Positions 2,848 through 63,190 of a DNA stretch of 64,000 bases are shown here, piece by piece; within the stretch, counting starts at the first letter, position 1, and every line of letters starts with the position of its first letter. Source of the stretch: Glycera tridactyla (Eukaryota); assembly GCA_965644265.1 (NCBI GenBank), contig OZ286467.1, positions 55,862,001 to 55,926,000 on the forward strand, written 5' to 3'. The translations under genes and the position numbers were made by a program. Under the pieces are notes generated by a model that did no database searches, was not told the DNA's origin, and was given only the letters and a program-made list of their open reading frames with translations.

Positions 2848-3007
2848 TTGAAACCTGCGACGAGAGACCACTTTAAATGTCACCAATAAGTGGTCTCTCA
2901 AAGGAGGTGGTCTCTCATCAAAGGTATGTTTGACTATGTCAAATAGAAATACTGGCCTGGAAAGGTGTTCTACCATAGGAGGTGGTCTCTTGTCGCAGGT
3001 TTCACTG
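2848..3007. mobile_element. Tc1/mariner-type MITE (GAAACCTGCGAC-AGAGACC family)
   Basis: Inverted ends GAAACCTGCGACGAGAGACC / GGTCTCTTGTCGCAGGTTTCACTG followed by TA; related pieces near 7430, 9895-10020 and 27315. Confidence 0.7.
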
Positions 3008-3242
3008 TATAGTGAGAGTACTGGTATTCGTCAAACACAATTGTCTTAATCCCATTCATTCTTCACTGTAGTTGATGTGACTTGACATTTGGCCATGTGC
3101 CAAATAGTCCAGTGGCTTACATTCTTGAGTGTCTAGTGAAATGAGATTATCTGGCTTTATTGATCAGGTGCATGCACTTTGTGTGGCAATTCTGCATTTA
3201 AAACACATAATTTTGCACAGGAAGGTTTTAAGCCATTAAGTA

Positions 3243-3420
3243 CAGTCAAACTTGTCCTGAGCAAGACTTGTACTAAGCAAGAACTCGTCTTAAGCAACAT
3301 GATTCTGTTCATCCCACCAGAGTATTTTTCACTATATTTGACCTGTACTAAGCATGAACTTGCTCTAAGCACAGACATTCTTCATGTCCCGTGGCTTCTT
3401 GCTTAGGACAAGTTTGACTG
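3243..3420. mobile_element. Tc1/mariner-type MITE
   Basis: TIRs CAGTCAAACTTGTCCTGAGCAAG / CTTGCTTAGGACAAGTTTGACTG; TA on the left, TG on the right. Confidence 0.8.
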
Positions 3421-3726
3421 TGCTTTAATAAGCCCCTGGAGACAGTTGGGTTATGATAATCTAACCCTGATAAATTGATTGCTTGAAAACAGGAGCGCAG
3501 GCTGTTCCTTGGCTGTCTTCAGCTCCGAGATTTTCAGACAGCAGCTTTGCGATGAGCATTGCATTTCTTATGGCCACCGCCGGGAAGGCCTGTGGATGAA
3601 TAGGTGAGCTCCAACACTCATTTGTGAGATGGTAGTTGCGTTGCACTGCGCAGCCAGGGGCTAATCTCCTCCCCACTTGTAACCTGGAAATAATAAGCTT
3701 TCCTGTCTTACTAAATTATTCAATCA

Positions 3727-4103
3727 CAGTCAGACCTGCTTGAGAGACCACCTACTTATAAAGACCACCCGCAGGACATTGCTAGCTGTGGGTAGCCAAT
3801 GGCTACCAAATTTACCCTCTGGCTGCCATATTTTAAAAGTTAGGAGCCAGCTGCCCCTAAAATTTTGAGAGTTTGTAATCGGCAATGTATTAACTAGCTA
3901 CCAAAATTTTGCTCTGGCTACCAAAAATTTCAACTTAGGAGCCAGCCGACTCCTAAATATTTTGGCCAATGTAGAGCCCTGCACCCTGAGCTGCAAACAC
4001 TATGGTATTTTCAACAGTAAATTAGCTCTCTGTAAAGTCCACCTGCCAATAAAGGCCACTTTTTGATGTGGCCAAATGTGGCCTTTATACACAGATTTGA
4101 CTG
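3727..4103 (+). mobile_element. Tc1/mariner-type MITE interrupted by a hAT MITE
   Basis: CAGTCAGACCTG ... CAGATTTGACTG+TA; the internal sequence resumes on both sides of the 3772-3981 insert. Confidence 0.75.
3772..3981. mobile_element. hAT-type MITE with ~6-bp TSD
   Basis: Ends CAGGACATTG / CAATGTAGAGCCCTG; internal GGCTACCAAAA repeats; flanks CACCCG / CACCCT, where the uninterrupted family sequence has a single CACCCT (10747). Confidence 0.7.
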
Positions 4104-4848
4104 TAATTCTAATGATGCATTCTTGGCTGCATCCTGCTTCTTCCATGCATACTAAATGGCTGAGGATAAGTCACTAATGAGTCCCAGGGATGCAGTGTCC
4201 AATCTAGAAAATGACTACAAGGGGGAAAATGCCCCACTCTCTGAAAAAGGGGGCATTTTGTGGGAAAAATAGGGGTGATTTGAAGGCCAGGGGGATTTTT
4301 TCAGGCGATGCCATGATCTTTCATATAAATGAAAAAAAAGCTTGGTAGTGTGGCCAGATGAAAATGACTACCCAGTTCTAGCACATGGCATACATGATCC
4401 TCCGTCCTGATACTTGATGTAAAACTCATAGCAATCAGTCAATCAATCAAGTAATGAATCAATCGGTTGTGATGACTAGATCTATCGACTGATGAAATAT
4501 ATTCCGCAGACAAAATGAGCTTGACTACCAGCTCGTACACATAAATAACCCCCTATTCCCTGTAGATCCTTCCTAACCACCCCCTCACTGAGATTGCTTA
4601 GTACTGGGGCTTCCCTTTCAGCACCTCCACCACAGGCTTTTGCTGAATGTATTCAACAAAGATTGGCACCAAGATAGGCACAAAAAATTATGCATTTCTC
4701 AGTGACTCTCTTTTTGTTGCCTCTCATACTGCAAGCTGTAGTGGATAAAAAACAGTGAGGCTTCACACCCTACCATCGTCATCTCAGTTTCATGGGCTTC
4801 CAAATGTACCTGTATCTTGGTTGTTGGGAGAGTGGTGATCTCCTTTGA

Positions 4849-5092
4849 CTGGGAATTCAGGGATGTGCAGAGAAAAAAAAACCTGATGTGTCAAATGACC
4901 CAATGACACAAAATGCAGTGGGTCATTTTGGATTTGAATGGGCCATTCCCTGGTGCGGCACTCTGCACGTCCCTGCGTTCATTGTTCAGAGTGGGTCATT
5001 GGCTCATTGCATCATGTCTCAGTGGGCCAATTCAAATTTGAATGTGGCAAATGGTGCAGGGCCCACCCCTCCGCACATCCCTGGAATTCCTG
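4849..5092. mobile_element. MITE, probably hAT-type
   Basis: Inverted ends CTGGGAATTCAGGGATGTGC / GCACATCCCTGGAATTCCTG; no TSD recognised. Confidence 0.55.
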
Positions 5093-5519
5093 CCAATTCA
5101 TACAGGCCATCTCTGGCATGTCACTGGTCCTTCTCTAGACTAACATTCATAGTATACATTGATAACTATTGTACTTCTGGGCCTGAAGCTTTGTAGAACA
5201 GTCCAAGCAACACCAAGCATAATCTTGTATATAGTACTATAGACATTCATCCTTTCGCTATTGTTCTGCTTGCTCTGTTACATTCACTTGCAATGATTTG
5301 CCGAAATCTTTGGCCAGTGAATCCTACAGGAACACCTTTTTAGAAACGACCTCATTGTACATAGATATGTATTTGATCAGTCAGCGTATGCCTTGACAGA
5401 ATTAAGTTCACCACAATAAGCTGTGTGTTTGATATAAGCAGCAGTAGGACAAATCTTAAACAAAAACACATGGCTGACTGACTTCAATCAAGATAGTAGA
5501 ATCACACAAATGTTCTATT

Positions 5520-5743
5520 CAGGGTTGTATCCAGAGGGGGCATGAGGGCATTTCACACGTTATATGACAGTGGGCCCTTTTCAGGGCAATCAGGAGCCAC
5601 AATGCCCCCTAAATCCACCTAGAGGCTGCACTGTCTGATATCAAGTGAATCCATTTGGGGACATTTTGTGAAGAAATGCCCCCTTCACTTGAATTCAAGG
5701 GGGGCAAATGCCCCCAATTTTAGAAATCCTGGATGCAACCCTG
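5520..5743. mobile_element. hAT-type MITE
   Basis: TIRs CAGGGTTGTATCCAG / CTGGATGCAACCCTG; second copy at 20521-20709; TSD not recognisable. Confidence 0.75.
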
Positions 5744-6682
5744 GTGTATGATTTATGAATCAATGATCAGTCCTGAAATCGTCGCCACTTCTAAATGATG
5801 ATATTGTTGTTGGATGATTGGATACATTCAATGATGCAGTGAAACCTGAAATGAGGGAAAACCATGAATGCACCGTAAAGTGGTCTCATCAGCCTTCAAT
5901 TCAAGCGTTAAATAGGAAAGCTGTGCGAAAAAAGTGCTTTCCCAACAGCGGTGGTACTCCACATACCCTTCCACTTTTGATTACCCTCAATCCATATTGG
6001 ACCCCCTCCCTGGTTCAAAGTAAATATCTAGTGCATGTGGGCATTGCATATAAATTAAGCTTTTTTTTCTGTTTGTAGGTGATAATTTACCCATTGGCGG
6101 AGGTCAACAAATATGTCTACATGGGATAATGAACTGGATAGTACTGTTACATGTTGTTCTATGGTTCTCCTTGAGTACGGCTAACATGAATTACCATCTT
6201 CCGTCCTGAGTAAAATGCTGGAATCATCTCCGGATATAATAATCAGAATCATTCAAGTAATCTGTTCTTCAAGAAATAACATCCCCAGAATGGAATCGTG
6301 GATACACCCAAAGTGAACTCTCAACTCTTCAGGATAACATGTATTAGACCTAATATTACTAAGAACTGAATTTTGGATGCCTATTCCATATTTTGTTTCA
6401 TGGAACTAACACTCGTTATGGTAGGAGCCTGTGGAGTCGCTGTCTGTGAATCCTAATTCTGTGAAATATTGCCTACTTCTAACAGCATTAATGAAGATCT
6501 CATCGGAGTATGACTACTATACAGTATTGCTGGGGCTGGCTACATTGTCCTCACTGTGAGTATGGGATCAAGAAGTAAAGTAGTCTGTATCTACATTTGT
6601 CAACAAAGTTGGATGATATCTCAATATATGAATCCACTTATGCATAGAACTACACAGACCTCAGTATCCTCAATGGGGGCTA

Positions 6683-6901
6683 CAGAGTATCAGATTTCTG
6701 GTGGGTCCAGGGCCCGTGGCCCACATTTTTGCCTTTTTGGCCCTTTGATATGACCTATAATGGGTCCACTGGCCCAGCTTTTTTGTCGCTTTGAACCATT
6801 GATGAATGGTGGGTGACCCACCATTTCGAGTTATGGCCCATGGTATTTCTAATTCATGGGCCATAAGGGCCCACTGACCTGTCAGAAAATCTAGAGCCCT
6901 T
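6683..6901. mobile_element. hAT-type MITE with 6-bp TSD GGGCTA
   Basis: Ends CAGAGTATCAGATTTCTG / CAGAAAATCTAGAGCCCT; GGGCTA at 6677-6682 and 6902-6907; GGCCCA subterminal repeats. Confidence 0.75.
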
Positions 6902-9900
6902 GGGCTAATTCAGATGTGATATATCCAGGAATAATTATGTATGTCAGTGATGCATTTTCGGGCGCATCCTACGTATTTCATGCACTTTAAATGAAGAAGG
7001 ACTCATCAACAAAGTCACTGATGAGTCCCTGGGATGCAAGAGGAAAATGACACTTCCATTAATTTCTGTGAGCTGGGATGATGAAACTGATGTATATAAT
7101 GACAAACATTAATTTCTGTACAAGTGTTTGTGAATGGAATGGGTATCTGACATGAAAATAATTTCTGGCACTTATCCATTTAAAGACTCACATGATGCAT
7201 CATGGGACCCACTCCAGACAGTCAGTTGGGGTCCCTGGGATGCATCATCATTTTGTTGAAAATGCATCACTGTATGTTAAGATTCACTGTACAGTTCTGT
7301 GCACACTACCAGACTGGTTAGATCATTTAGTACTCCCAGCTGGTAGATGTTCAGAATTGTTGAGAAATGAAGTCGGTGGAGCTGCAAATACTTGAAATGT
7401 ACATAGTCTGCCATATTACTTCATTCAAACCTGTGACAAGAGATCACCGGAAGTGTCACCAAAAAAGTGGTCTCTCATCAGAAGTTTATTTGACTATTTC
7501 ATTGCTTCACTAATTGACTGGTAATGTCTGTCTATGATATACAGGGTTCATACAAGGTAATCCGTTGTTTGCCTTGAGGAAGTATGGACTTTTGTGATCT
7601 GACCAGATATCTTGGAAAAAGAATGGAATTACGTCACAATAACAATGATCCATCAGCTGCTGGGGTTATTTCATCGGGGGATTTGCCCAAAATACTTCAG
7701 ATAGGCATATATACCTTTGAGCATGACATGCAGGTATTCATTTATATAAATTTATAGAAATCCCGAGAATGCCGGCATGTGAATCAAGTAATCTCGGCGT
7801 ATAATTGTGATCATGAAAGTTGTTTGCAAAAAATGGAGTCATTGCGATGAATAAGTAGAAAATGGTATGGAATGTTACAACTTTGATGAAGCGTTTCTCG
7901 GATCAGTGTCCAAGTTCATTGTTCAGTTCATTCAAATAATTGCTCTTGACTGTAATTTTTTCTCAGAGACTAATTCTCCATTGGAGTGATGTGGCCAAAT
8001 TCGAAGATGTGCCTGACTGCCATCCGTCCAATCAGACATTTCATTGAAATTATTGAGTTTTTGCAGAAATTAAATCACTGTCACGATTCAATCTATCATA
8101 TGTGATATTATCCCATGAGGTGCCTTCAACCCTATGCCTTCACAACTGCTGATTATTTCGATGGCGGTTTTTACATCAAGCCCAATTATGCACTTTTTCA
8201 ATTTTCTACATCTGTCTTTTATAAACTTGTTTTAACTGCCATCACAGTTTACTTCCATCAAACTGCCCTCGTGACATACCTTGAATACAGGTATCTCAAC
8301 AGAGTATAATCATGTACGGAATCGTTCACCCTGGTAACCTGCATAATGCTTGAAATTAATATAGAAATATGTACTTATGCATCTTCATATTAGTGAAAAA
8401 AATTGTAATATTGTTAACTTTGCTTATATTTATACTTGAATTCAAATGGTAGCATTTATACTGTAGTGCCTTATGAGGAATATTGTATGTACATATATTT
8501 ATCTTATGAAACGTTGATTTTTGCTGACATATACCATTGTATATGTGAGTCAAAGATGTGATCGATATTGCATGATCGTGTTGATGACTAGCACTGTGAT
8601 CATGGTTGCGTATGGAAAACGGGATAACTGGTGGTTTCAGATCAATCACCTAAAGTGATTCATTCATTTCAGATGGCAGAAAGTATTCAATGAAGTGGTC
8701 ATTATCAAACCGAGATGCCGTGCATCACAATTTTGGAGTGGTGATCCTCTTATTTGATCATTGGAAATACTGCCATCATTACTCTTAAAAATTGACATCA
8801 TTGCTAAATTTGATTATCAAAGGTTGGCATCGCTGATGAAACAGATATCCTTTCACCATGGAAGGATTGATGTGATAAGTGTTACTATGTTGCAGGGATA
8901 TCCTTACACTGTGCACTGTGCTAAATGGCACATAAAGCAGTGAAACGGCACATTAAGCCATACATTTTGTGCCCAAAAGGCGCATGGAATTTTCCATACT
9001 TCGATATGATCACATGGGTTGGGGCACACACAAATCTGAAATGGCACATGGAATCTGCCTCTATGTGCCCAGAGGACCCATACGTATTCCCAAGTAAGGA
9101 AATCTCTGATGTTGTACAAAAGTTGTTGAAATTCAGAACAATTGGGCCTTGTTTTCTGCCTTTTTTGGGCCTGATGATGGATTGTATGGCCGTTATCATT
9201 AGGTCGGGAAAGGCAAACTTGAATAGGCTCATGGCTGAATCTTGGCTCGTCGTTTGACATAAGATAGATTTAAGCTCATGTGCCTTCAAATTTCATCCGT
9301 CCTCCATCAAATTATTGTCCAGTTATAATCTAAGGAGTTTTGGTACTATTCACCTGATATTTGGCTGGCTATGATCATGAGAAGATGTCTTGGGTCATGT
9401 CTGAAGTTGTGTGAGTGTATGTGCATGTGTGATTGTGTGTGTATGTCCAGCAATTTGAATGTCATCCTCTGAAATGTACTATGTGAGGCTTTCCGATGGC
9501 TTGATTTTGACTATATTCTAGTTCCTCTGCCATTTGCTGCTGTACAAAATCCAAAAAATTATTACTGTGGTTTGAGCCCCCCCCCCCCCCCCCTCATGTA
9601 CAATATGATGGGGTTTGGGGAAATTATGATTGAATGGGAAACAACCCAAACCTTGGTATGATATTGTTCTTGTGATTCAATATCTATCCAAAGTAAAAGG
9701 GCCAAATTCGGGCTCTTTTCTGCATTATCTAGATGATGCGGGAAAGAGCCTGAATTTGACCCTTTCACTTTGAATTTTCTTGCCACCGAGTTGCAGTCAC
9801 AAGAAATTCTGATAATCACATTTTAGATAAAGATCAATTGCATCCTGTCACTATGATTAACATGGTTTTCATTGTGAGGATCTCCACATGCTGTGAAACC

Positions 9901-19188: not shown

Positions 19189-20103
19189 CAGAAATGACAC
19201 CTCAGGAGTCTGTGAATTTCATAAATTTTCACCTATTGACCCGGGAGGAGGAGTCTTGGATGATCCCTCCCATGCCCATCTTATGGGCGTCACAATATAG
19301 CACAGCTGCAGCTGACGTGACGTTAACCCCCAACCGACCAGTGTTCATAAAAATAGCGATTCTAATAAGGCAATGGATGGACATTCTTTGGCATGTCAGC
19401 CAGCCAAGTGAAGGTTAGTGAATTTCACTGCGTAACAAAGTGGCCAGAAATAGCTGGCCTAGTGGAAGCCATATGAATCAATCACATTTTCACGGGGTGA
19501 CACCGTGGTCAACATTTTTGAAAACAGAAATGGCACCTTGAGTGTCACTGAGTTTCATGAATATTCACCTTCTGTTTGGGATCTAGAGGGAGGAGTCTTG
19601 AATGACACTACCCCTGCCAATTGCGTGCATAACACAATATAGAAGACCAGATGGTGCCCACGAACGTAAGAGTAACGAACTACCAAACAACCAATCAGTC
19701 AAGACTTTGAGACTAAAGATTATATGATCCCAGGAATGACACCTTGAGTGTACCAGGGGAAGAGTTGGCCCCACGTTTCCCTACGTGTTGTAAGAGGCGA
19801 CTAAGTGGGCATCCCAGAAACGACACCTCGGGTGTGTCTGTGAATTTCATAAATTTTCACCTTCCGTTTGGGACCCAGAAGGAGGAGTCTTGGAAGATCC
19901 CACCCACGCTCATTGCATGGACGTCACAATATAGTTCAAATGGTGCTGATGTGACGTTAAATCACAACCAACCAACCACCTTGAGAGTCTGTGTATTTCA
20001 TGAATTCTCTACCCAGAAGGAGTCTTAAGTGATCCCACCCACGCCCATTGTATGGGCGTCACAGTATAGCACATAAATCGCTTACGTGACGTTGAACCAG
20101 AAG
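19189..20103 (+). mobile_element. Head-to-tail cluster of family A copies (about 19189-19340, 19405-19700, 19733-19760, 19816-19980, 19981-20103)
   Basis: Repeated AATGACACC, GTGAATTTCATAAATTTTCACC, GGAGGAGTCTT and GGGCGTCACAATATAG blocks, all on the + strand. Confidence 0.8.
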
Positions 20104-35343: not shown

Positions 35344-35555
35344 GAGACTGAGGCTCATGTCGGATATTATTTGTGCCAAGTATGTACTCTGACTGCCATC
35401 TGACTCTATGTTATTTTCATATTTCTAGTTATTATAGTTTGAATAATAGGAGTGATAATCATCTTCCAACAAAGTTTTAATTCAAGATAGATGGTTTTGG
35501 TACAGTTATTGCAGTATTCCTTTGCTTAATGTACATGGACATCAAATTGTCGATA

Positions 35556-35745
35556 GCAGAAATGACACCTTGAGTTCTGTGCATTCCATAAATATTCGCC
35601 CTCTGTTGAGAACCCAGAAGGAGGTGTCTCGAATTACCCCACTCATGCCCATTGCATGGGCGTCATTTTCTAGCACAAATGGAGCTGACGTGACCTTAAA
35701 TCCGAACCAACAATCCAAGCAACCAACCTACCAACCAACCAACCG
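35556..35745 (+). mobile_element. Family A copy
   Basis: CAGAAATGACACCTTGAG..CCCATTGCATGGGCGTC..GTGACCTTAAA plus CAAC tail. Confidence 0.8.
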
Positions 35746-36284
35746 ATCAAATTGTCGATTGGTGGCCCAGGTGGGAATTTCACTCTCACGATGTGTGGTT
35801 GGATTCCATTTAATAGAATAATAGGTTAAGGTTACAACGTCTCCATAGTTCGGCGGGGAGTTGCCCTCGCATTTCACGGAGAAATACACAGCAGGTCAAA
35901 ATCGGAGTCACGTGGATTAAGCGTATAAAGAAGCAAGATGCAGTGGAAGTTCAAGAGTGTCTCCATGGTTAAATTCCGCCCCACTGAACAAGATGATCAT
36001 GCAATGGCAGGTGGGCGACCCCGGCCCTAGTATTGGTTGCGATAACGTGATATGTTGTGGTTCAACGTCTGATATCCACAGCAAGTTCATTCAGCTTCAC
36101 AATGACATTCCTTCGCAGGCCTGTTCCAGCTAGAGCATTTCTCCCAACCACAGGCAAAGAGTTGACTGCATGGGCTAAGCACTCTACAATTACCATCACT
36201 GCCTAGTCAAATACCCATCTACACCTGGGTGATTTCTACTCAATGAGAAGCACAATTCATATAGATAGATCTGCCTAATGGTGT

Positions 36285-36496
36285 AACCCAGTGCATGCCG
36301 ACTGGGATATCAAAGGCCGGCCGTGTAAATAGGAGTCTTTTCCTGTGCGGACGTAAAAGAACCACTGCTGTCTTTTGCAAAGAGTAGGGACGGCCCCCGG
36401 CATGCGGTGACTCTTTTCTTCAGCATTTTTAGGGATTTCTGAGTCCGATATAACCCAAGTGGGTTTAAGCGACGTTATCTCAAACAAACAAACAAA
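36285..36496 (+). mobile_element. Free-standing ~210-bp retroposed element B (LINE 3' UTR / Deu-Nin-like core)
   Basis: Starts AACCCAGTGCATGCCGACTGGG, ends (CAAA)n; TSD CTGCCTAAT(G/A)GTG at 36271-36283 and 36497-36509. Confidence 0.85.
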
Positions 36497-37403
36497 CTGC
36501 CTAATAGTGCCGGTCCAGTATGGAATGGTGAACATTGCTCATCTGGGACATGCATCTGAGGAGGAGCCCTGGACAATATTGTGAACAATGTTACTCAGTT
36601 GAGACCCCCCCCCCCCCAGGTTTGTCTAATGGGCGTTAACACCTACCTTTCAATGTCTTCAGTGGGATTGAAGTCAACGTAATGTGACAATGCTCAAATA
36701 CCAATGCCAATTCTATTCTAGTATGCTTATATTAGTTGTAAAATTCTCGCTTCTCTGCCTAACAATTCAAGTATGTGTTTGTTTTGCAAGAATCTGTAAA
36801 TCAGATGCTTATAGTATGTCTCACTATAAGTGAGGTGCTTCATGTTTGTATAATGTCATGACTGGAGGAGGAGGGATGATACACTCTCCTAATAAAAGTT
36901 CTGATGAATGAGGCCTCAGAAGCAATTTAAAGCATTCGTTGTGGCCTTTGACACCTTTGGAAGCCTTCGATAATCAAAGATGTCGCCGAAGATAGCCTTG
37001 CGTTGATCGTTGAAGCAACTCAACATGAATAATGCTGTTTTGCAGTGGTTCGGTGCCCGGTGGAATGTAACAAAGACATGGGTCGAGAAGCACATAATGT
37101 GCCTTTCTACGCACTAGTCTTCATAATAACGACATCATTAGTACACACAGTCGATCTTAGAAAAGGCGCCCGAGGTACATCGGGAAGCAGGCAAAAGTCT
37201 CTTCAATGATAGGATTCACAAAGCTTTAACAAAACTTTTTTATATGGTGTCCAGATCCAAATGCATGTTTATGTTTGAGATGTGCTTGAGATAGTGTCAA
37301 TACTGATGTATGACATTTTCAATAAAAGCGATTGGAAATTATGATTGATAATTGATTGATATAGAGAGTAATGTTTTCAAGTGTAATTCATTTGTGGTGA
37401 GAA

Positions 37404-43958: not shown

Positions 43959-45134
43959 CAAGAAAATCCCGATGTCATTGCTCCTCTCGGAATAAGATTC
44001 GGAATCATATACATCTGGCCCAGTCAACAAAGGAGACCACCAACCCATCACTATACAAAAGTAGATACCTAGAGATTAGGTCACATTATAGTGATCATGA
44101 GGCCATCTTCACCGATGGATCCAAATGTGAGAGCAAAGCATCAGCAGCTGCTTATACAGAATCACAAACCTATTACTGCAGGCTACCTGATTGGTCAACA
44201 GTGTTTTCAGCTGAAGTGAGTGCTTTACTTATGGCTTTCAAATACATATCAAGATCGGAAAAACAAAAGTTCATAATTTTCACAGACTCCCTGTCTTCTC
44301 TGCAGGCCTTTCAGGAAAATCTCAGGAACTGTATACTCTTGCAAATCTTAGAAGAGTATCAAATAATCAAAGATCATCAAAAGACTCTCAGACTTTGCTG
44401 GATTCCAAGACATATTGGAAATCCTGAAAATGAGGCAGCTGATAAAGCGGCCAAAAGAGCTCTAGGTTTACCAGTCACTGAGATGGAAATCCACTATTCC
44501 GACTTCAAGCCAAGAATAAAGCTCTATATTGACCAACTCTGGCAGAATGAATGGGGAACCAAAAAGCAAAATAGATTATATTGCATCAGTCCAAAACTGG
44601 AGGACAGATTTCCTGTGAGAACTATGAATAGAAGAGAGGAGATAGTACTTTCCCATCTGAGGATAGGACATACATATCTCACACATTCACACCTCCTGAA
44701 AAAAAACGAGGCAATCCTAATTGCTTTGCATGCGGATGCCATCTCACAGTCGAACATTTATTGCTCAACTGTAGAAAACTATTGCAAACTAGAGTAAAGT
44801 ATTACAGTGTTGAAAATATCGCACAACTTTTCATGAAAGTCGATCCAACGGACATACATGTATTCGATTATTTGCATGAATTGTGAGTATTTAGACAAAT
44901 ATGAATCGTATGCATGCTAACCCAGTGCATGCCGACTGGGATATCAAAGGCCGGCCATGTATATACGAACCTTTTCCTGTACCCATGTTAAAGATCCACT
45001 GCTGTCTTTCGCAAAGAGTAGGGATAGCCCCCGGCAGGCAGTGACTCTTTTCTTCAGCATTTTCAGTTTTTTTTTCAGTCCAATATAACCCAAGCGGGTT
45101 TAAGTGATGTTAAACTCAAACAAACAAACAAACA
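43959..45134 (+). mobile_element. 5'-truncated copy of the Nimb/I-group LINE (RNase H, CCHC remnant, 3' UTR element B)
   Basis: Colinear with about 51489-52742 with a small internal deletion; ORF 44201-44797 contains FTDSLSSLQA and WIPRHIGNPENEAAD. Confidence 0.9.
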
Positions 45135-45844
45135 CACCAACCAAGGCAGGGCTGTCTCCTTTTTCAACATGTTCAGTCTAACCAAGTGAGTGTGAAAGGA
45201 CGTTAAACCCAAACACAAACTAACCAACAAACTTTCTCGTTACATCAACGTGATACGATAAGGAACACGCATTTTCCGGCTGGTGATGGAACGCCAGTTC
45301 ATGACATGAATGTACGGTAGATCGTGTGTCACTGAGTAGAATTTTGCCAGGAAAACAGGTCAACGATAGTGGTTGAATGAACTGTAGGTTTATGTTTGAA
45401 GGTATGTTGAGAATGTTATGGCGCCGGGCAAAGCTATTGATCAGAGGCAGCAGGGCACGTCTTCTTTGCCTTTGGCAGGGTAGCGAGTCATTCATGAAGG
45501 TCACAATGTCACCCGTGATGCTATTCGGCACAGAACATGGCCGACAACACTTCAACAATAGATCAGTCCAACCTGCCTTATTTGCCTCCACCGGTGCAGA
45601 CCCAGATGGCACCACGATCGGGCCGCGCACACTGGACCTGCACGCACTTCTCTTTGGTAATCCAAGCGGCTATATTGAGAAAGGTAGAAACTCGGCGATC
45701 GACACTGATTGGTGGAGCTAATATATAGGTCATTACTGAGGCCAGGCTGCCCTACTTGCTTTGTAAGATTCTCCAGCAATATACAATGCTTCTGTTGTTT
45801 GTTTAGTGGACAAAATCGGCAACAGCAATCTTACATAGTTGGTA

Positions 45845-46034: not shown

Positions 46035-46530
46035 AACTCTATGCAGATGATACGCAGCTATATCTTACATATGATAGACACTCTCAAACGCTGAATTGCT
46101 GAAATAAGGATGCTCACAAATAAGCTCAAACTCAATGACTCCCAGACCGAGTTTCTTCTTTTCTCCAACTACAACCTTGATTCCCCATCTCTGTGAATTT
46201 CATAAATTTTCACCTTTCGTTTGGAACCCAGAAGGAGGAGTCTTGGAAGATCCTACCATGCCCATTGCATGGGCGTCACAATATAGCCCATATGGTGCTG
46301 ACGTGACGTTAAACCACAACCAACCAACCCCATCCACCCAAAAGATTAACATTTGGGAGGATGTCATCAGCTCTGGCAGGTCGATCTGCCGAAAAGCTGG
46401 GTGTCATCTTTAATGGTCGCCAACCCTTCACCATACATGTCACTGCTATTTGTAAGTCTGCATTCTTTCAGCTATACAAAATCAGCCGCATCCACAAATA
46501 TCTGACAGCAGATGCAACACAAATCCTCAT
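46035..46530 (+). pseudogene. L2/CR1-group LINE reverse transcriptase fragment
   Basis: LYADDTQLYL, NKLKLNDSQTEFLLF and LGVIF..HVTAICKSAFFQLYKISRIHKYL motifs in broken frames; interrupted by family A at 46190. Confidence 0.8.
46190..46327 (+). mobile_element. Family A copy with 7-bp TSD
   Basis: TSD CCCCATC at 46183-46189 and 46328-46334, consistent with target-primed retroposition. Confidence 0.9.
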
Positions 46531-48915: not shown

Positions 48916-49566
48916 CGACCGTATCATCAACAGTTGTTGCCTTAAGCTGTAACTTACGGAAGTTTGTCAGGGATCTGAATTCAAAAGCGGGTATTTGCTC
49001 ACTGCAGACGAGATGACGCCGGCGCCGTAATAATCAAATTTAACAAAATCCGAAGTATCGCCTCAGCAAATCGAATAGAAGTCCTCAACTTTTTATGCAA
49101 TTCATTAGAGCGGTGCCCATTCCAAGCAGCAGCAGCCAATTGAGAATTAAAATCCCTCGTACTAAAGTTCTTCATTTGGGCTGGCATGTATTGCAACGGA
49201 TCCCCGCCCAGGCTGAGAATGATAATGAGTCTCGAAAGTTTCATGAGGGTAATGAGGGATGATTTCAAAATGCCGGATGCAGACCAAGCAGCAGTATGAT
49301 GCCACTCTACGTCTAGCTATGTGGACCACCAGAATCTCTTTAACAACTATTTCGGTTTGAAAATGCTACTTCATACACCGGTCGGCAAAACAGATACTCT
49401 TTCCCTTCAAATATATCTGCCTGAGTTCTTTTGTGTATCAGGTCCCTTTCTCATCTCATCAATTCTGTTTTGTATACTGATTATATTTGTGTATTACTTA
49501 TACTTGCTTGTAAATATGTCTGTTTTCCCAAATAGGAAACTATAGTCCGTAGATACCTCCACAAAA

Positions 49567-52500
49567 GAAAAATTATCCAGTGTGGACATTTTGAGTGCAG
49601 ATGATCCCATTCAAAACTTCACAGAGATAATGCATGGTGTAGCGTTACAAACCATCCCCAAGACCTCTCCTTATCAAGGACAGGCTTCCAAACCATGGTT
49701 CAACGATGATTGCAGAGAAGCTATTGATGAAAGGAAACAAGCACAGAAAGACTTCTCCAGAAGACCTGCTGCGGACTTATTGACTGAGTACAAAGTACTG
49801 AAGGCGAGGTCTCGTAGGACATGTCGCAGCAGTAAGTGTCACTGTTGGAGGGAGTTTGTATCAGGACTTAATTCAAACACACCCATCAATAAGGCTTGGA
49901 ACATGATTCAACGAATCCGTGGAAAGGGTAGAGGCCCACGAATCCACCATCTAAAAAAAGATGATCATCTGATCACGCAACCTCAGGATATTTCGGAATC
50001 ACTAGCATCACAATTTGCACAAAATTCATCTTCTGAAAATCACTCAGAGGAATTTCAAAATTATAAAGAAAAGGCTGAAAGAAAACAACTTGATTTAACA
50101 TCTGATAATACAGAAGAATATAATCAGCTCTTTTCGATGACTGAACTAGAAACTGCATTGAATGCATCCCATGATACCTCCCCAGGGCAAGATGACGTCC
50201 ATTATCAAATGCTGAGACATCTGCCAGCCTGCTCTTTGCAACAGATGCTTGATATCTTTAACCAAATTTGAGAGACTGGATGCTTTCCCACTTCATGGGC
50301 AGAAGCCATAGTCATCCCCATAGCAAAGCCAGGTAAGGATCCATTTGATCCTGTAAATTACAGACCAATAGCACTCACAAGCTGTGTCTGTAAGACCATG
50401 GAAAGAATGATAAATAAGAGGTTGGTTTGGTACTTGGAGTCGAATGAATTGCTAACACCATATCAGAGTGGTTTCCGGAAGGGCAGAAATACACTGGACA
50501 ACCTGATAAGGTTCGAGACATTTATTCGTGAGGCCTTTGTTCAGAAGCAGCACTTAGTTGCAGTTTTCTTTGACATGGAGAAGGCTTATGACACCACCTG
50601 GAAATATGGAATTATGAAAGATCTACTCAAAATGAACCTTAGAGGCAGGATGCCCATTTCCATAGAAATTTTTTTGCGGGATCGGTCTTTCCGTGTCCGA
50701 GTTGGATCTACTTTCTCAGATGATTTCGACCAGGAAATGGGGGTCCCACAAGGAAGCATTCTATCAGTTACCCTTTTCAGCATTAAAATGAATAGTATCA
50801 TTGAATGCCTCTCCCAGGACACCAATTGCTCCTTATATGTAGATGACTTTCTTATTTGCTATGGAGCTAGACAAGTTCGGGTAGTGGAGAGGAAACTACA
50901 GCAAACCCTATACAAACTTCAAGACTGGGCGGACAAGAATGGCTTTAAATTTTCTAAACCAGAACAGTTTGCATGCATTTCTGTAGATCAACAAGGCATC
51001 ATGATGAACCTGAGCTCTTTCTAGGTGGATCAGCAATACCAGTAGTGGAACAAACAAAGTTCCTAGGCCTGGTCTTTGACCGACGATTGGCTTTCAAACC
51101 CCATATTCAGCAACTCAAAGTCAAATGCCTCCAGTCACTTGACATGCTGAAGGTGTTATCCCACCTGGACTGGGGGGTTGATCGGGAAACACTGCTCATG
51201 GTTTACAGATCTCTTATTCGATCTAAATTAGATTATGGGTGCATGATTTAGGGATCGGCATGCCCAACCAACCTCAAAATGCTTGATACAGTCCATAACC
51301 AAGCCTTACGCATATGCCTCCGAGCTTTTCGGACATCACCTACTGAAAGCCTACATGTGGAAGCCAATGAACCTTCACTTCATCTACGAAGGATAAAGTT
51401 AGGTCTCCAGTACTGTCTGAAATTGAAAGCAAACCCATCGAATCCAACACATGAAAGTGTCTTCAGGCCTAAATATAAACAGGAATTTCAAGAAAATCTC
51501 CATGTCATTGCTCCTCTTGGAATAAGATTCGAAAATCGCTTTGGAAGTTGTGACTTTGACACACTCCCAGTATCACAGATGGATCCTGCTCAGATTGCGG
51601 ACTGGGACTGTGACATTCCACAAACACATCTGGACTTGACTCAGTCCACAAAGGAGAACACCAACCCATCGCTATACAAAAGTAGATACCTAGAGATCAG
51701 GTCACGTTATAGTGATCATGAGGCCATCTTCACAGATGGATCCAAATGTGACAGCAAAGCATCTGCAGCTGTTTATACAGAATCACAAACCTATTATTGC
51801 AGGCTACCTGATTGGTCAACAGTGTTTTCAGCTAAACTAAGGGCCTTACTAATGGCTTTCAAATACTTATCAAGGTCGGAAAAACAAAAGTTCATAATTT
51901 CCACAGACTCCCTGTCATCTCTGCAGGCCTTGCAGGGAAATCTCAGGAACTGTATCCTCTTGCAAATCTTGCAAGAGTATCAAATAATCAAAGATCATCA
52001 AAAGACTGTTAGACTTTGCTGGATTCCGAGCCATATCGGAATTCCTGGAAATGAGGCAGCGGATAAAGCGGCCAAAAGGGCTTTAGGTCTGCCAGTCACT
52101 GAGATGGAAATCCATTATTCTGACTTCAAACCAAGAATAAAGCTCTATATTGACCAACTCTGGCAGAATGAATGGGCAACCAAAAAGCGAAATAAATTAT
52201 ATCGCATCAGACCAAAACTTAAGAACGGATTCCCTGTGAGAACTATGAATAGAAGAGAGGAGATAGTACTTTCCTGTCTGAGGATAGGACATACATATCT
52301 CACACATTCTCACCTTCTGAAACAACAAGGCAATCCTAATTGCTTTGCATGCGGATGCCATCTCACTGTCAAACATTTATTGCTCGACTGTAGAAAACTA
52401 TCGCAATCTAGAGTAAAGTATTACACTGTAGAAAATATGACACAACTTTTCATGAAAGTTGATCCAACAGACATATTCGGTTATTTGCATGAATTGGGAA

Positions 52501-52742
52501 TATTTAGACAAATATGAATCGTGTGCATGCTAACCCAGTGCATGCTGACTGGGATATCAAAGGCCGGCCGTGTATTTAGGAGCCTTTTCCTTTACGCACG
52601 TTAAAGATCCACTGCTGTCTTTTGCAAAGAGTAGGGACGGCCCCCGGCATGCAGTGACTCTTTTTCTTCAGCATTTTCAGTTTTTCAGTCCGATATAACC
52701 CAAGCAGGTTTAAGTGACGTTAAACTAAAGCAATCAAACAAA
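49567..52742 (+). mobile_element. 5'-truncated I-group (Nimb-like) LINE with TSD
   Basis: TSD CCTCCACAAAA at 49556-49566 and 52743-52753; ends GTGACGTTAAAC plus CAAA-like tail; encodes RT, RNase H and CCHC. Confidence 0.92.
49582..52517 (+). pseudogene. LINE ORF2 (RT, RNase H, zinc knuckle), disabled
   Basis: YRPIALTSC upstream, QSGFR, FFDMEKAYD, GVPQGSILS, LYVDD; FTDGSK, DSLSSLQAL, WIPSHIGIPGNEAAD; CFACGCHLTVKHLLLDC. Lesions: TGA at 50269, frameshift near 50970, TAG at 51249. Confidence 0.92.
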
Positions 52743-53104
52743 CCTCCACAAAAAAGTTCAAATCTAAATTGCCAGAATGAGGAGTGTGGAATAATCACAC
52801 CCATACTAATGGCATAGTCCTCTCAATATAACCCAGATGGTGCATGTGAGACATCAACCGATCAGTCAAATGAAGAATAAGCCTTGTTCTTCATCATCAT
52901 AAAGTAAGGGATTATTAGCCAAACCACGCAACCAAAGTAAAAATGATGTAAGTGTAAACGAGGTAGTAGTGAGAGTGGGAATCCCTCCCACGAAGATATT
53001 TCTCCCACAGATAGTGAATCAGTTGCTGTAGCTGTGCGGTGGACATTCATGTGATTCATGGAATGTGATCCTGACCTCCATGCCCGCCAAACACACCCAT
53101 GCAT

Positions 53105-53625: not shown

Positions 53626-54327
53626 TTTGTTTGTTTGTTTGACCTAACGTCACTTAAAGCCGCTTGGGTGTAATCGGACTGGAAAAACTGAAAATGCTGA
53701 AGAAAAGAGTCACTGCCTTTTGGGGGCCGTCCCTACTCTTTGTGAAAGACAGCAGTGGATCTTTGATGTGCGTAAAGGAAATAGCTCCTGAATACACAGC
53801 CGGCATTTGATATCCCAGTTGGCATGCACTGAGTTAGCATGCACACAATTCATATTTGTCTAAATATTCCCAATTCATGCAAATAATCAAATACGTCTGT
53901 TGGATTGACTCATGGAAAGTTGGGTCATATTTTCAACAGTGTAATACTTCACTCTAGTCTGTGATAGTTTTCTACAGTCGAGCAATAAATGTTTGACTGT
54001 GAGATGGCATCCGCATGCAAAGCAGTTAGGATGGCCTTGTTTTTTCAGAAGGTGTGAATGTGTGAGATATGTATGTCCTATCCTCAGACGGGAAAGTACT
54101 ATCTCCTCTCTTCTATTCATAGTTCTCACAGGGAATCCGTTCTCAAGTTTTGGTCTGATGCGATGTAATTTTTTTTGCTTTTTGGTTCCCCATTCATTCT
54201 GCCGGAATTGGTCAATATAGAGCTTTATTCTTGATTTGAAGTCTGAATAATGGATTTCCATCTCAGTGACTGGCAAACCTAGAGCCCTTTTGGCCGCTTT
54301 ATCCGCTGCCTCATTTCCAGGAATTCA
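53626..54327 (-). mobile_element. Inverted 5'-truncated copy of the same LINE (3' 700 bp)
   Basis: Reverse complement of ~52040-52742; ORF 53887-54276 with CFACGCHLTVKHLLLDC; element B at the 3' end. Confidence 0.9.
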
Positions 54328-54822
54328 ATAGGAAGAGTCGTAAAACGACAAACGAATCCACTTCTCTAGCAAGCAAAAGGTATCCGAACCATAAAATAGT
54401 AATGGTTTGGTACACATTTAAAATGAAGAATAAAAACGTTGATCAGAGTATTCTGGAGTGATTGGCTCTTTGGATCAGGGATTGGCCATTTTCCAACAAT
54501 CTGATCTTATCCCGACGATAAGACATGAGTAGGTGCGAAGGAGATTTTTCTCCTTGACATTTGAGAATGAATGTATGCCTACTTAACACATTTTATTTCC
54601 TCGAAGCAGTGAAGCACTTCCGTCTGATGATCCTGTCAGTGACATCTGGCTGGTAAACACATTTCTCTTGAGTCTATCGATTCTCAACATGTAACTGCGT
54701 CTGGCTATTTTGATGATGAGGATATTTGAGGACTGTGAACAAATCGACAACAGAAATCACCCCATAAATCTGGGAACTCTGATTATTTCACGATATGTTG
54801 ATTTGATTCATTGCTGCCACTG

Positions 54823-55033
54823 AACCCCCAGTGCATGCTGACTGGGATATTAAAGGCCGGCCATGTATTTGGGAGCCTTTCTTTACGCACGTTAAAGATC
54901 CACTGCTGTCTTTCGCAAAGAGTAGGGATGGCCCCCGGCAGGCAGTGACTCTTTTCTTCAGAGTTTTCAGTTTTTTTCAGTCCGATATAACCCAAGCGGG
55001 TTTAAGTGACGTTAAACTCAAACAAACAAACAA
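54823..55033 (+). mobile_element. Free-standing element B
   Basis: Starts AACCCCCAGTGCATGCTGACTGGG; TSD CTGCCACTG at 54814-54822 and 55034-55042. Confidence 0.88.
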
Positions 55034-55109
55034 CTGCCACTGGATGTTAATGGCTGGCCGCGGGTTTGGGAGTCTACTCCAATATGCATGGGCTTTGGCT
55101 TTGGTCAGG

Positions 55110-57807: not shown

Positions 57808-58030
57808 GTCAAGTCAGCTGATCCCTTGTTCTCAGGGTAACAATGTGGCCAACATCTCTGGTACCAGGAATGAAACATTGAGTGTCAGTGAATTTTCTGA
57901 AAATTCACCTTCCGTTGGGGCCCTGAAGGGTGAGTCATGAATGGTCCCACCCCTGCCCATTGCATGGGTGTCACAATATAGCATGTATGACGCTGACGTG
58001 ATGTTAAATCAAAAACAACCAACCAACCTG
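57808..58030 (+). mobile_element. Family A copy
   Basis: CTGATCCCTTGTTC..GCCCATTGCATGGGTGTCACAATATAGC..GTGATGTTAAA plus tail. Confidence 0.8.
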
Positions 58031-59832: not shown

Positions 59833-60709
59833 CTCATCTCAGGTGTCTATGGATATATGAAAGACATCTTCCAGAAAGGACACAACAGATCGATTCTGTG
59901 ACTGATTTGTAGCTAACGAGTTGCGTGCTATTACTCCCCATTTGCACACCCATTTAAAAGGTTCATTGGCATTCACAATGTCGTGTGCACAGAAAAAGCC
60001 TACATCTTTGATCGTGAGTTATGAAGGTGGAGCCATGCTAGCTTTGATCTTGTAAGGCTATCTAATGAAAATATGTGCGCTGAAAAAAGTGCCACAAGAG
60101 TATAGACATTGTTCAACTCCGATGAAATCGGAACAACCATGATTTGTTCTAGATTATTAAAGGAATTTTCCCCATGTCCACATCATAATATTGAGTCCCC
60201 ATTCATTCATTTGAATTATTCAACAGCAACTGACATGTCAATTGAGGAGAATAACAATCGTGAAATGGATGTATCGTGATCTCAAACGAGAAAGAACAGT
60301 CCATTCAAACCATCTCAGGTATGTCATTGGATTGAATGCCATGAAATACAATTTATCATTCATAATGACTTACCATCTAACTGACTATAGACGGCCAAAA
60401 CACATTTAGATACTTGATTTGAAGAGGAGCTGATGGATGATTAGATTTGCTTCAGGATAATTTAGGGCAACCTTTCGAGCTCTTTTAGCTGATGCCTGAT
60501 TGTAATGCACACACCACTTGAAATCCAATACGGTGGGAAGTTCTTGTTGCTGTGCCAAAGCAAAATCCCTCTACTTGTCAATCAGTTGCATGAGAGAAGA
60601 AATACATTTGACACCTTCGAGGGTCTGTGAATTTCATAACTTTCCACCTTTTTGCTGAGAGCTCAGATGTCTTGATGCCATCCATTTCTTCGGCGTCTCA
60701 ATGTAGTCC

Positions 60710-60927
60710 AACCCAGTGCATGCCGACCGGGATATCAAAGGCTGGCCGTGTACGTAGAAGTCTGTTCCTGTATGCACGTGAAAGAAACATATGCACTGCC
60801 GTCTCTCGCATAGAGTAGGGACGGCCCCCGCCAGCGGTGCCGCTTTTCTTCAGCATTTTCAGTTTTTCAGTCCCATATAACCCGAGGTGATTAAAAGGAC
60901 CTTAAACCCAAGCAAACAATCAACACA
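60710..60927 (+). mobile_element. Free-standing element B inserted into a decayed family A copy
   Basis: Starts (AA)CCCAGTGCATGCCGACCGGG; TSD CTCAATG(T/C)AGTCCAA at 60697-60711 and 60928-60942. Confidence 0.82.
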
Positions 60928-62194
60928 CTCAATGCAGTCCAAATAACGTACGAGAGACGTAAAACAAGCGACCAACCAAGTGCTCCAAATAAACATGTGA
61001 TTATTTCTATTGGCTGTAGGAGCCATCCGTGATTGGTGGATAGACGTCTGAGCATTCATGGGGGACACTGCATTCAACGAGACAGATGGAGATGTAAGTA
61101 GCTGGACACTGAGGTTGGGAGTGAGTTATGGAGCCTACATTCAAATTAAGACAGATATGGCGGTAGTCAGACCAACATTGAAAGATTGATGCATAAGTAG
61201 GCCCACTGGTGCTACTTTGAACACACAAATCACAATGTAGAGAATAAATGGTACACGAAGCCTGAAATGAATTAAATTGTCGTTTACTAATTAAATAAAG
61301 GGCAGATATCTGTGGATCGGAAGTGCTTTCTCTAATCCTATGACTCAGATCTCTTTCAACGGCTATGCAATATAGCCGAGGTGGTGTTGACGAGAGGGAA
61401 ATCGCCAAGCAACTCACGACCCGACCATCCCAATCACATGGCTAATATATAACCCCAAACATCCATTCCACTTTCACCTGCAGCATCTTTCACACCATTT
61501 ACAGACACAGACACAGTTGGACACAAGAACAATGAGAAAAACAAATGTGAGGAAATTTTCATTGTGGTGTCAAATGGCTCATTTCATAGATTATATTGAT
61601 TCTTGTCCCAAATCAGAGATGACACCTCGAGTATTTCATGATTACTCTCTATTCTATTTTCATCCATGTATTATTGCAATGGTTACTTCCACTTGTAATT
61701 GGGTCGGAAAGTACTATTGTAGTCCATTGCCTGAGATGGATTTCATATGCAGGCGACTCTTGTCCGGACCTGGACTTTTGACCAGGGATGAACACATTCT
61801 TCTCGGCGCATTGCTCAATGGCATTTATTCAAAATTCGCTATTTCGTGGAGAAATGTTGAATGATCCCCTCACTTGCCCATTACATTTCTGTCTCAATAT
61901 AAAAGCTCAGCCGGTGCTCATGAGATCGTAAACAGTCAACCAGCTAATCAACAAGCCAATGATACCTGTCTCATTGGCCAGTATACCGAAAGATTGGACT
62001 GCCGTGGAAAGAATTATGCCGTGTTCCTGACATTTGGGAGCTGGATTCTTTGTCCCATGCAGGCACCACTCTCACACACTCTAAACTTTAGATGATGGGA
62101 ACCATTGAGGTTGTCAAATGGAAGTAGCTGCTGTCAAGTGGAAGTAGCTGCTGTTCGCACAAATAATGGTATTTCTGAATATGTGTCAGCTCAC

Positions 62195-62435
62195 AAATTG
62201 CTCCGCATTGGGTGCCATCTCACAGGTTGGGATGTATTGCTTGATTGTAGAAAACTATCACCCATTATAGAAAAGTATCACAGTGGAAGTTGATTCAATA
62301 TACATTTTGATCATTTGCATGAATAATGGGCATTTAAGCAAATATGAATTGTATGCATGCTCACCCAGTGCACAGCGACTGGGAGATCAAACGTCGGCCA
62401 TGTGAATGGGGGTCTATTACTGTATGCATGCCCCC
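62195..62435 (+). mobile_element. Old fragment of the same LINE 3' end, including the ORF-to-element-B junction
   Basis: GCHLT..LLDCRKLS; AAATATGAATTGTATGCATGCTCACCCAGTGCACAGCGACTGGG. Confidence 0.75.
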
Positions 62436-62459
62436 CACGGCTTCCACCTTTATGCGGTG

Positions 62460-63190
62460 GTGGGGATTGTGTGCTTCAATGATCTCAAGAGCCATGCCAG
62501 ACAGGTTCAACCATACTGGACAGGTCTTGAGTGAGGGGCCAGACAAAGTGAAGCTACACTCCTCCATGGGAGAGCCTTGCCTTCGACATGGTGGAGGGGC
62601 TTGAGTGTCATGAGGACCCTGAGAGCTATACCAGATAGGTTCAACCATACTGGGCAGGTCTCAGGCAAGTGGCCAGGAGAAGTCTCCCTGGGGCAGGGGG
62701 GATTGCGTGCTTCAGTGATTTCAAGGGCTATGCCGGACAGGTCCAACCATACTGGACAGGTCTTGAGTGAGGGCCAGACAAAGTGAAGCCCCCCGTAGGT
62801 GCCCGGGACTTTTGGCAAACCAGTAGAGAATAGGTTCCATGTGTATCCCTATGTGATATAAGTGGGACCCCTTTCTTTACATGCATGCTCCAATGATCTC
62901 GAAGAGCTATGCCAGACAGGTACAACCATACTGGACAGGTTTTCAGTGAGGGCTCATTGGAAGTGAAGCTACCCGATGGATGCCCAGGATGTTTGGAACA
63001 CCGAAAGAGTAAAATAGGCCCCACGTGAATCCTTATGTGTCCTAAGTGGGAATCCACTTCTCCTCCATGGGAATACTATGCCTTTGGCATGGTAGAGGGG
63101 CTTTTGTGGCATGAGAACCCTCTGAGCTAAACCAGATAGGTTCAACCATACTGGGCAGGTCTCAGGTGAGTGGCGATTTGCATGTTCCCT
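62460..63190. repeat. Irregular array with five copies of a 28-bp core
   Basis: CCAGA(C/T)AGGT(T/C/A)CAACCATACTGG(A/G)CAGG at 62497, 62631, 62733, 62912 and 63132. Confidence 0.85.

Follow-up and report, generated by a model that had tools for sequence, protein, structure and literature searches.

The closest precedent for the element described here is the Drosophila retroelement suffix and its partner LINE, the F element. Suffix (Tchurikov) is a short retroelement that exists as separate copies and also forms the 3' end of the F element (PMC1868783, PMC3136478), and its separate copies are reported to be transcribed more than those borne by F elements (PMC3136478). The unit studied here, hereafter the S unit, is like suffix in having no known Pol III head and in being present both separately and as the 3' end of a LINE. 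Suffix, however, overlaps the last conserved reverse transcriptase (RT) domain and is coding, whereas the S unit, a tail-only and head-less LINE derivative with thousands of copies, lies strictly in the untranslated region (UTR), starting 15 nt after the stop codon. Unlike in the suffix case, the partner LINE of the S unit has an RNase H domain and a microsatellite tail; a single-base 5' end and recurrence across LINE subfamilies are S-unit features that have not been stressed for suffix (PMC1868783, PMC3136478). Other ORF-less, non-autonomous LINE derivatives are listed only as bipartite forms made of 5' and 3' LINE parts, and only from RTE, Ingi, Vingi and R2 (Kojima 2018, PMC5786205). Such derivatives (RIME/ingi, NARTc/L1Tc, Bov-A, Vingi) resemble the S unit in being non-coding and moved by a parent LINE, but in them the two ends of the LINE stay joined, whereas the S unit has no 5' part (local alignment of the first 200 nt of the LINE with the S unit scored no better than shuffles) and its partner has domains arranged as in the I/Nimb group.

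Where conserved SINE bodies come from is an open question (Kojima 2018, PMC5786205), and how head-less short retroposons gain a defined RNA template is poorly understood. The present genome offers a clean, high-copy case, with three LINE subfamilies and copies diverged by as little as 0.6%. What marks this case out is that the mobile unit is exactly UTR, that it starts at a single base 15 nt past the stop codon, that it recurs across subfamilies, and that its copy number is probably about ten thousand. A literature search with S-unit k-mers returned no match.

Three free copies of the S unit lie in the window (the whole 64-kb stretch of DNA that was analysed), all on the + strand and each flanked by its own target-site duplication (TSD) adjoining AACCCAGTG. 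Copy 1 (36285-36496), an older-looking variant, has a 13-bp TSD with one mismatch (36271-36283 and 36497-36509) and one additional T before AACCC. Copy 2 (54823-55033) has a 9-bp TSD (54814-54822 and 55034-55042) and a head with two additional C. Copy 3 (60710-60927), from an old subfamily and 79% identical to copy 1, has a TSD at 60697-60709 and 60928-60940 that measures 13 bp with one mismatch, or 15 bp counting AA. The three are 79–88% identical in pairs over about 212 nt, with a mean column identity of 83% in the three-way alignment, and a (CAAA)n-type tail closes each of them. A BLAST search of the window with the S unit gave three further full-length matches, each of which forms the 3' terminus of a LINE copy truncated at its 5' end: 44919-45132 (+) in the copy at 43959-45137 (+), which starts at LINE position 4622; 52532-52742 (+) in the copy at 49564-52743 (+), which spans LINE positions 2696-6008, contains RT and RNase H ORF pieces and served as our ruler for the boundary; and 53626-53835 (-) in the copy at 54326-53625 (-), which starts at LINE position 5304. 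The earlier note on this DNA, made from the letters alone, had placed three free copies with their own TSDs at just these positions, had identified the unit as a LINE 3' UTR retroposed alone and had reported scattered starts for the longer LINE copies, and the window bears out all three statements.

The partner LINE is about 5.9 kb long and encodes a 447-aa ORF1 that has no Pfam match, followed by an ORF2 with AP-endonuclease (PF03372/PF14529), RT (PF00078) and RNase H (PF00075) domains in that order; the ORF pieces in the window carry the RT (PF00078) and the RNase H (PF00075). Members of the I/Nimb group have their domains in this order, and it is on this order that we base the provisional clade name. 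Comparison of long copies places the full-length LINE 5' end at positions 1957-1961 of a long copy, L081, where about 20 copies start within 7 nt. At the other end, the ORF2 stop codon TGA (52515-52517, + strand) is followed by a 14-nt spacer (52518-52531) and then by the LINE-attached S unit. This unit comprises all of the 3' UTR except the 14-nt spacer, is about 212 nt long and has as its first base the fixed 5' end of the free copies. The spacing of 15 nt from stop codon to S start is identical in L081.

Two candidate relationships were tried and rejected. An AACCC common to the S unit and the LINE 5' end did not hold, as a C run preceded by variable bases marks the start of the LINE RNA in TSD-delimited full-length copies. 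A second LINE family bearing the S unit, suggested by LINE-like coding in the upstream flanks of three loci (L002, L018, L037), is better read as insertions into old LINE copies. As separate observations, at the end of the window there are three successive occurrences of the first ~124 nt of the 5' UTR of the LINE (62431-62554, 62698-62789 and 62890-62969), in the manner of promoter monomers, and a tandem array on contig C1 (14410211-14529031) has at least 27 units with a period of ~4.44 kb that contain the LINE-to-UTR junction and the S-unit head but lack the pattern at S-unit positions 97-115.

The 5' end of the S unit was then mapped genome-wide. An internal 19-mer (S-unit positions 97-115) has 7127 exact matches in the 2.04-Gb genome, and its reversed control has none. 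We took as our sample the first 100 of these places, all on C1, a different contig from that of the window, and aligned each of them to 900 nt of LINE plus S unit; because the anchor lies inside the S unit, this sample is unbiased with respect to the 5' end. The alignment ended exactly at the first A of AACCC in 22 of 100 copies and no more than 3 nt away in 38 of 100, while another 22 extended past the 800 nt fetched. None of the 100 ended between -29 and -9 from the S start. End density was 0.02 per nt further upstream and 0.17–0.26 per nt inside the S unit, so that the spike at the S start stands more than 100-fold above both sides. This sets the S unit apart from ordinary 5'-truncated ("dead on arrival") LINE copies, which are likewise collinear with the LINE 3' end and have the same tail and TSDs but start at scattered points. 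Setting aside a duplicated locus and a LINE copy that had been mis-scored leaves about 36 short copies that are independent; their upstream flanks are mutually unrelated in nearly all cases, and about 20 sampled copies have clean TSDs of 8–14 bp adjoining AACCC.

Exact pattern counts over the whole genome gave the same picture. The head 21-mer occurs 8806 times, the head with 9 nt downstream 6471 times, and the head preceded by 9 nt of LINE 2910 times, with no match for the reversed controls; LINE sequence thus precedes the head in about 45% of head-bearing copies, and in about 55% the match to the LINE is lost within 9 nt. By rough extrapolation from such exact-pattern counts, the copy number is probably of the order of ten thousand. 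The 5'-end distribution, which the earlier note had proposed as a check on its fixed start, shows a spike in the 100-copy sample and is not smooth, and the genome counts agree. These results indicate that the start is set by a defined process and not by random truncation, that it is fixed to a single base either ahead of insertion or in its course, and that the S unit has been inserted alone thousands of times, with TSDs and the (CAAA)n tail of the LINE.

Contigs from four public runs (two studies, two organism labels) carry the S unit within longer, varied contexts, and their summed depth steps up exactly between 52531 and 52532 in all four. The step is 12–14x in three runs that we guessed to be RNA and 3.4x in a run of unrecorded kind with DNA-like depths, figures to be read with the proviso that contigs cannot rank depth. 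The three guessed-RNA runs each have 9–12 contigs that diverge at 52532 into varied sequences; the fourth run has one such contig.

We examined the relationship between short and LINE-attached copies in 78 head-bearing units, which fall into three subfamilies, each with members of both kinds (short/attached: Y1, 23/18; Y2, 8/15; OLD, 11/3). The OLD analysis used the 14 copies already in the C1 sample; the old-subfamily pattern has 919 exact matches genome-wide. Median divergence was 3.9% for short and 3.1% for attached copies in Y1 (P = 0.41) and 9.4% and 9.5%, respectively, in OLD. In Y2, the youngest subfamily, the medians were 3.6% and 1.1% (P = 0.02), with short copies down to 0.6%. No substitutions diagnostic of short versus attached copies were found among these units, nor was any lineage made up of short copies only. 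A tree of all 78 requires at least 19 changes between short and attached labels, compared with 25.9 ± 2.3 in shuffles, 0.7% of which reach 19; the clustering of labels is mild and far from a single origin. Because short copies occur in all three subfamilies and match the attached copies in divergence in Y1 and OLD, we infer that they were made repeatedly, and also recently, from whichever LINE subfamily was active, and not by one separate SINE lineage or short master. The maker would be the LINE's own reverse transcriptase, since the 3' region recognised by such enzymes is retained in full in the short copies.

Classical SINEs with a LINE-derived tail share several traits with the S unit: they are short and non-coding, have TSDs, share their 3' end with a partner LINE and depend on it. 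They also have a head derived from a small RNA (tRNA, 5S or 7SL) with A and B boxes, whereas the S unit has neither and is LINE sequence throughout. At gathering score, Rfam models gave no match (tRNA, 5S, 7SL, snRNA) in the 64-kb window, ARAGORN found no tRNA there or in 34 loci with short copies, and the S unit contains no A or B box. Together with the unrelated upstream flanks, this agrees with the earlier note, which had seen no Pol III head; longer copies with a tRNA head, the case that it had set against its own reading, were not seen in the sample. The S unit contains four internal T4-T5 runs, every one followed by C, a context of weakened Pol III termination that has been noted for mollusc SINEs (PMC4758252).

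A second head-less retroposon in the window has a similar organisation. Element A, of which one copy lies at 35555-35745 (TSD 35541-35554 and 35746-35759), is about 190 nt long, with a fixed 5' start, a (CCAA)n tail and no recognised head. It has 17 copies in the window (e.g., 46190-46329, 57862-58026 and 19815-19978) and is commoner there than the S unit. Over its last ~40 nt (ATATARCCC...GTGACGTTAAAC), element A matches the end of the LINE 3' UTR, and it is therefore probably moved by the same LINE group. In a separate observation, L081 (contig C32) carries at 6822-6950 an in-frame stretch of 129 nt (43 codons) resembling the core of element A, located in ORF2 between RT and RNase H and absent from five other long LINE copies and from the window copy; either an exonised fragment of a SINE or a LINE variant could account for it.

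At the RNA level, a 5'-terminal hairpin is predicted at 52534-52553 (+), beginning 2 nt from the S 5' end, with a 6-bp stem (CCCAGU/ACUGGG) and an 8-nt loop that contains the palindrome GCAUGC (dG -10.1 kcal/mol, z -3.45). This palindrome might pair either with itself or, ~100 nt downstream, with CGGCAUGC. The fold of the whole unit was no better than shuffles (z -0.85), and RNAalifold on the 78 copies found almost no informative variation, too little to test any structure, because the copies are neutral decays of few sources. Upstream of the boundary, a stem-loop is predicted at 52487-52530 (-9 kcal/mol, z -1.2), which places the boundary 2 nt 3' of it; three helices inside the S unit that lack a spike are at least as strong. 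A TATA-like ATATTTAG at 52500-52507 (+), inside the last ORF2 codons, occupies positions -32 to -25 relative to the S start, and the step at -1/+1 is T|A; the box would suit an internal transcription start but could be chance in AT-rich coding sequence. At -1, the short copies are not enriched for the T that the LINE has there, so that microhomology to upstream LINE sequence is not involved, and no extra G, as is sometimes left by a capped start, was seen at the 5' junctions. As a further sequence feature, GUGCAUGCU occurs twice, 7 nt apart, flanking the fixed start (52522-52546), and its second copy falls in the hairpin loop.

We consider it about an even bet (probability ~0.5) that the template of the short copies is a discrete sub-LINE RNA produced by an internal start, by cleavage or by a decay stop. 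Under this proposal, the LINE message would yield an "isolated 3' UTR" RNA whose 5' end is already at the fixed base before reverse transcription, and the LINE enzyme would copy this short RNA completely, just as it copies the full-length LINE. The RNA could come from an internal transcription start (TATA-like box at about -31, pyrimidine/purine step at -1/+1), from cleavage just beyond the stop codon, or from decay in the 5'-to-3' direction stopped by the terminal hairpin. In cellular mRNAs, cleavage at this place is known to yield isolated 3' UTRs. HDV-like self-cleaving ribozymes set LINE 5' ends in R2, RTE and L1Tc, and these, like 3'-UTR-derived stable RNAs and viral exonuclease-resistant RNAs, have 5' ends fixed after transcription and serve as working models for a short template; the S unit differs from them in being known from DNA and in matching no Rfam model. 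The discrete RNA is favoured because the 5' cluster is as tight as the true full-length LINE 5' end, because the upstream side is empty, and because the TSDs adjoin the first base with no microhomology at -1. The 45:55 split in the pattern counts, the repeated origin of the short copies across subfamilies and the precedent of the more strongly transcribed separate suffix copies (PMC3136478) speak for it too, and the 12–14x depth step in the runs guessed to be RNA counts weakly in the same direction. It is disfavoured by the junctions, which lack an extra G, by the absence of a match to any known ribozyme or resistant-RNA family and by the unremarkable whole-unit fold, and also because a strong stop in target-primed reverse transcription would leave the same genomic picture, namely a one-base spike, shared subfamilies and shared ages. 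In that event the template would be ordinary LINE RNA, and in about half of events the enzyme would fall off, or second-strand synthesis would begin, at the S start, possibly owing to a fold, to an RNase H-resistant primer or to something bound there, such as the ORF1 coat protein or, 15 nt past the stop, a terminating ribosome. The position of the boundary, 2 nt beyond the upstream stem-loop and 15 nt past the stop codon, suits such a stop; the shoulder of starts at +1 to +11 could be stutter, and the truncation rate, ~4-fold lower upstream of the boundary, fits an early, poorly processive phase of the enzyme. The weak upstream fold nevertheless argues against a stop and for the discrete RNA. 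So does cost: a site at which more than half of events are lost at 210 nt would be expected to disappear, yet it has been kept through three subfamilies, up to ~20% divergence. Nor are ribosomes expected at the site of target-primed reverse transcription, which is nuclear. On balance we rate a strong stop as less likely than the discrete RNA, but as a serious rival to it. The earlier note had offered a stall of the RT at the 5' structure itself, which fits poorly in that the cDNA ends after the whole 5' hairpin has been copied and the -9 kcal/mol fold upstream is matched by spike-free helices within the unit.

The same note had also raised self-cleavage, for which we found no support: Rfam contains no self-cleaving ribozyme or exonuclease-resistant RNA that matches the window at gathering score, and at E ≤ 10 the interval 52300-52800 gave four weak, unrelated matches and no known ribozyme. 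A further reading, that the first ~25–120 nt of the S unit alone fix the RNA 5' end, by self-cleavage or by stalling a 5'-to-3' exonuclease, would have the GCAUGC loop of the terminal hairpin pair with a conserved CCCGGCA block ~100 nt downstream; we think it has a slim chance. Almost as improbable, in our estimate, is that the short copies constitute a head-less SINE-like family in its own right, transcribed from an internal promoter of Pol II or of an unrecognised Pol III type, which has sequence in common with the LINE 3' UTR and repeatedly exchanges it through template switching. Element A, with its fixed start and the same last ~40 nt, shows that short units lacking known heads do spread in this genome, and the mild clustering of labels on the tree, the excess of short copies in OLD (11:3) and the C that follows each T run, weakening Pol III termination (PMC4758252), count in its favour. 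The short copies, however, carry the variants of each LINE subfamily and its divergence in Y1 and OLD, and they form no lineage with a diagnostic change of its own; the unit also lacks A/B boxes and a small-RNA head and has four T runs inside it. Segmental duplication, mis-assembly or chance alignment is hardly credible as the source of the pattern. Some copies do duplicate one locus (L039/L040, L028/L029), and there are local same-strand clusters and a tandem array, but the reversed-pattern controls are empty and four public runs from two studies have the same depth step with various flanks at 52532. All such artefacts are refuted by the independent flanks and by TSDs proper to each copy.

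If the template is indeed a discrete 3'-UTR RNA, it would amount to a "subgenomic" RNA of a LINE and a plausible first step towards a SINE, to which a head could be added by template switching. If the first part of the unit alone fixed the RNA end, it would be an RNA device undescribed for any retrotransposon, through which LINE messages or host transcripts with the unit would become retroposition-ready mini-RNAs, and thus a possible route for the birth of SINE bodies. A strong stop, on the other hand, would reveal a built-in weak point of the LINE enzyme or RNP.

Two minor observations concern the placement of the copies. Short units often lie inside other short units or LINE copies (~7 of 36, e.g., L055 at C1:18788288-18792491, L014, L016 and L008), and one of these nested units has a 14-bp TSD inside another unit; such nesting may reflect a target preference or a high LINE content. 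Copies also share one strand over tens of kilobases, being all minus across C1 18756207-18791573 and all plus across 19266017-19329005, and five of the six S units in the window are on the + strand. These same-strand runs may reflect an orientation bias inside large genes or local duplications.
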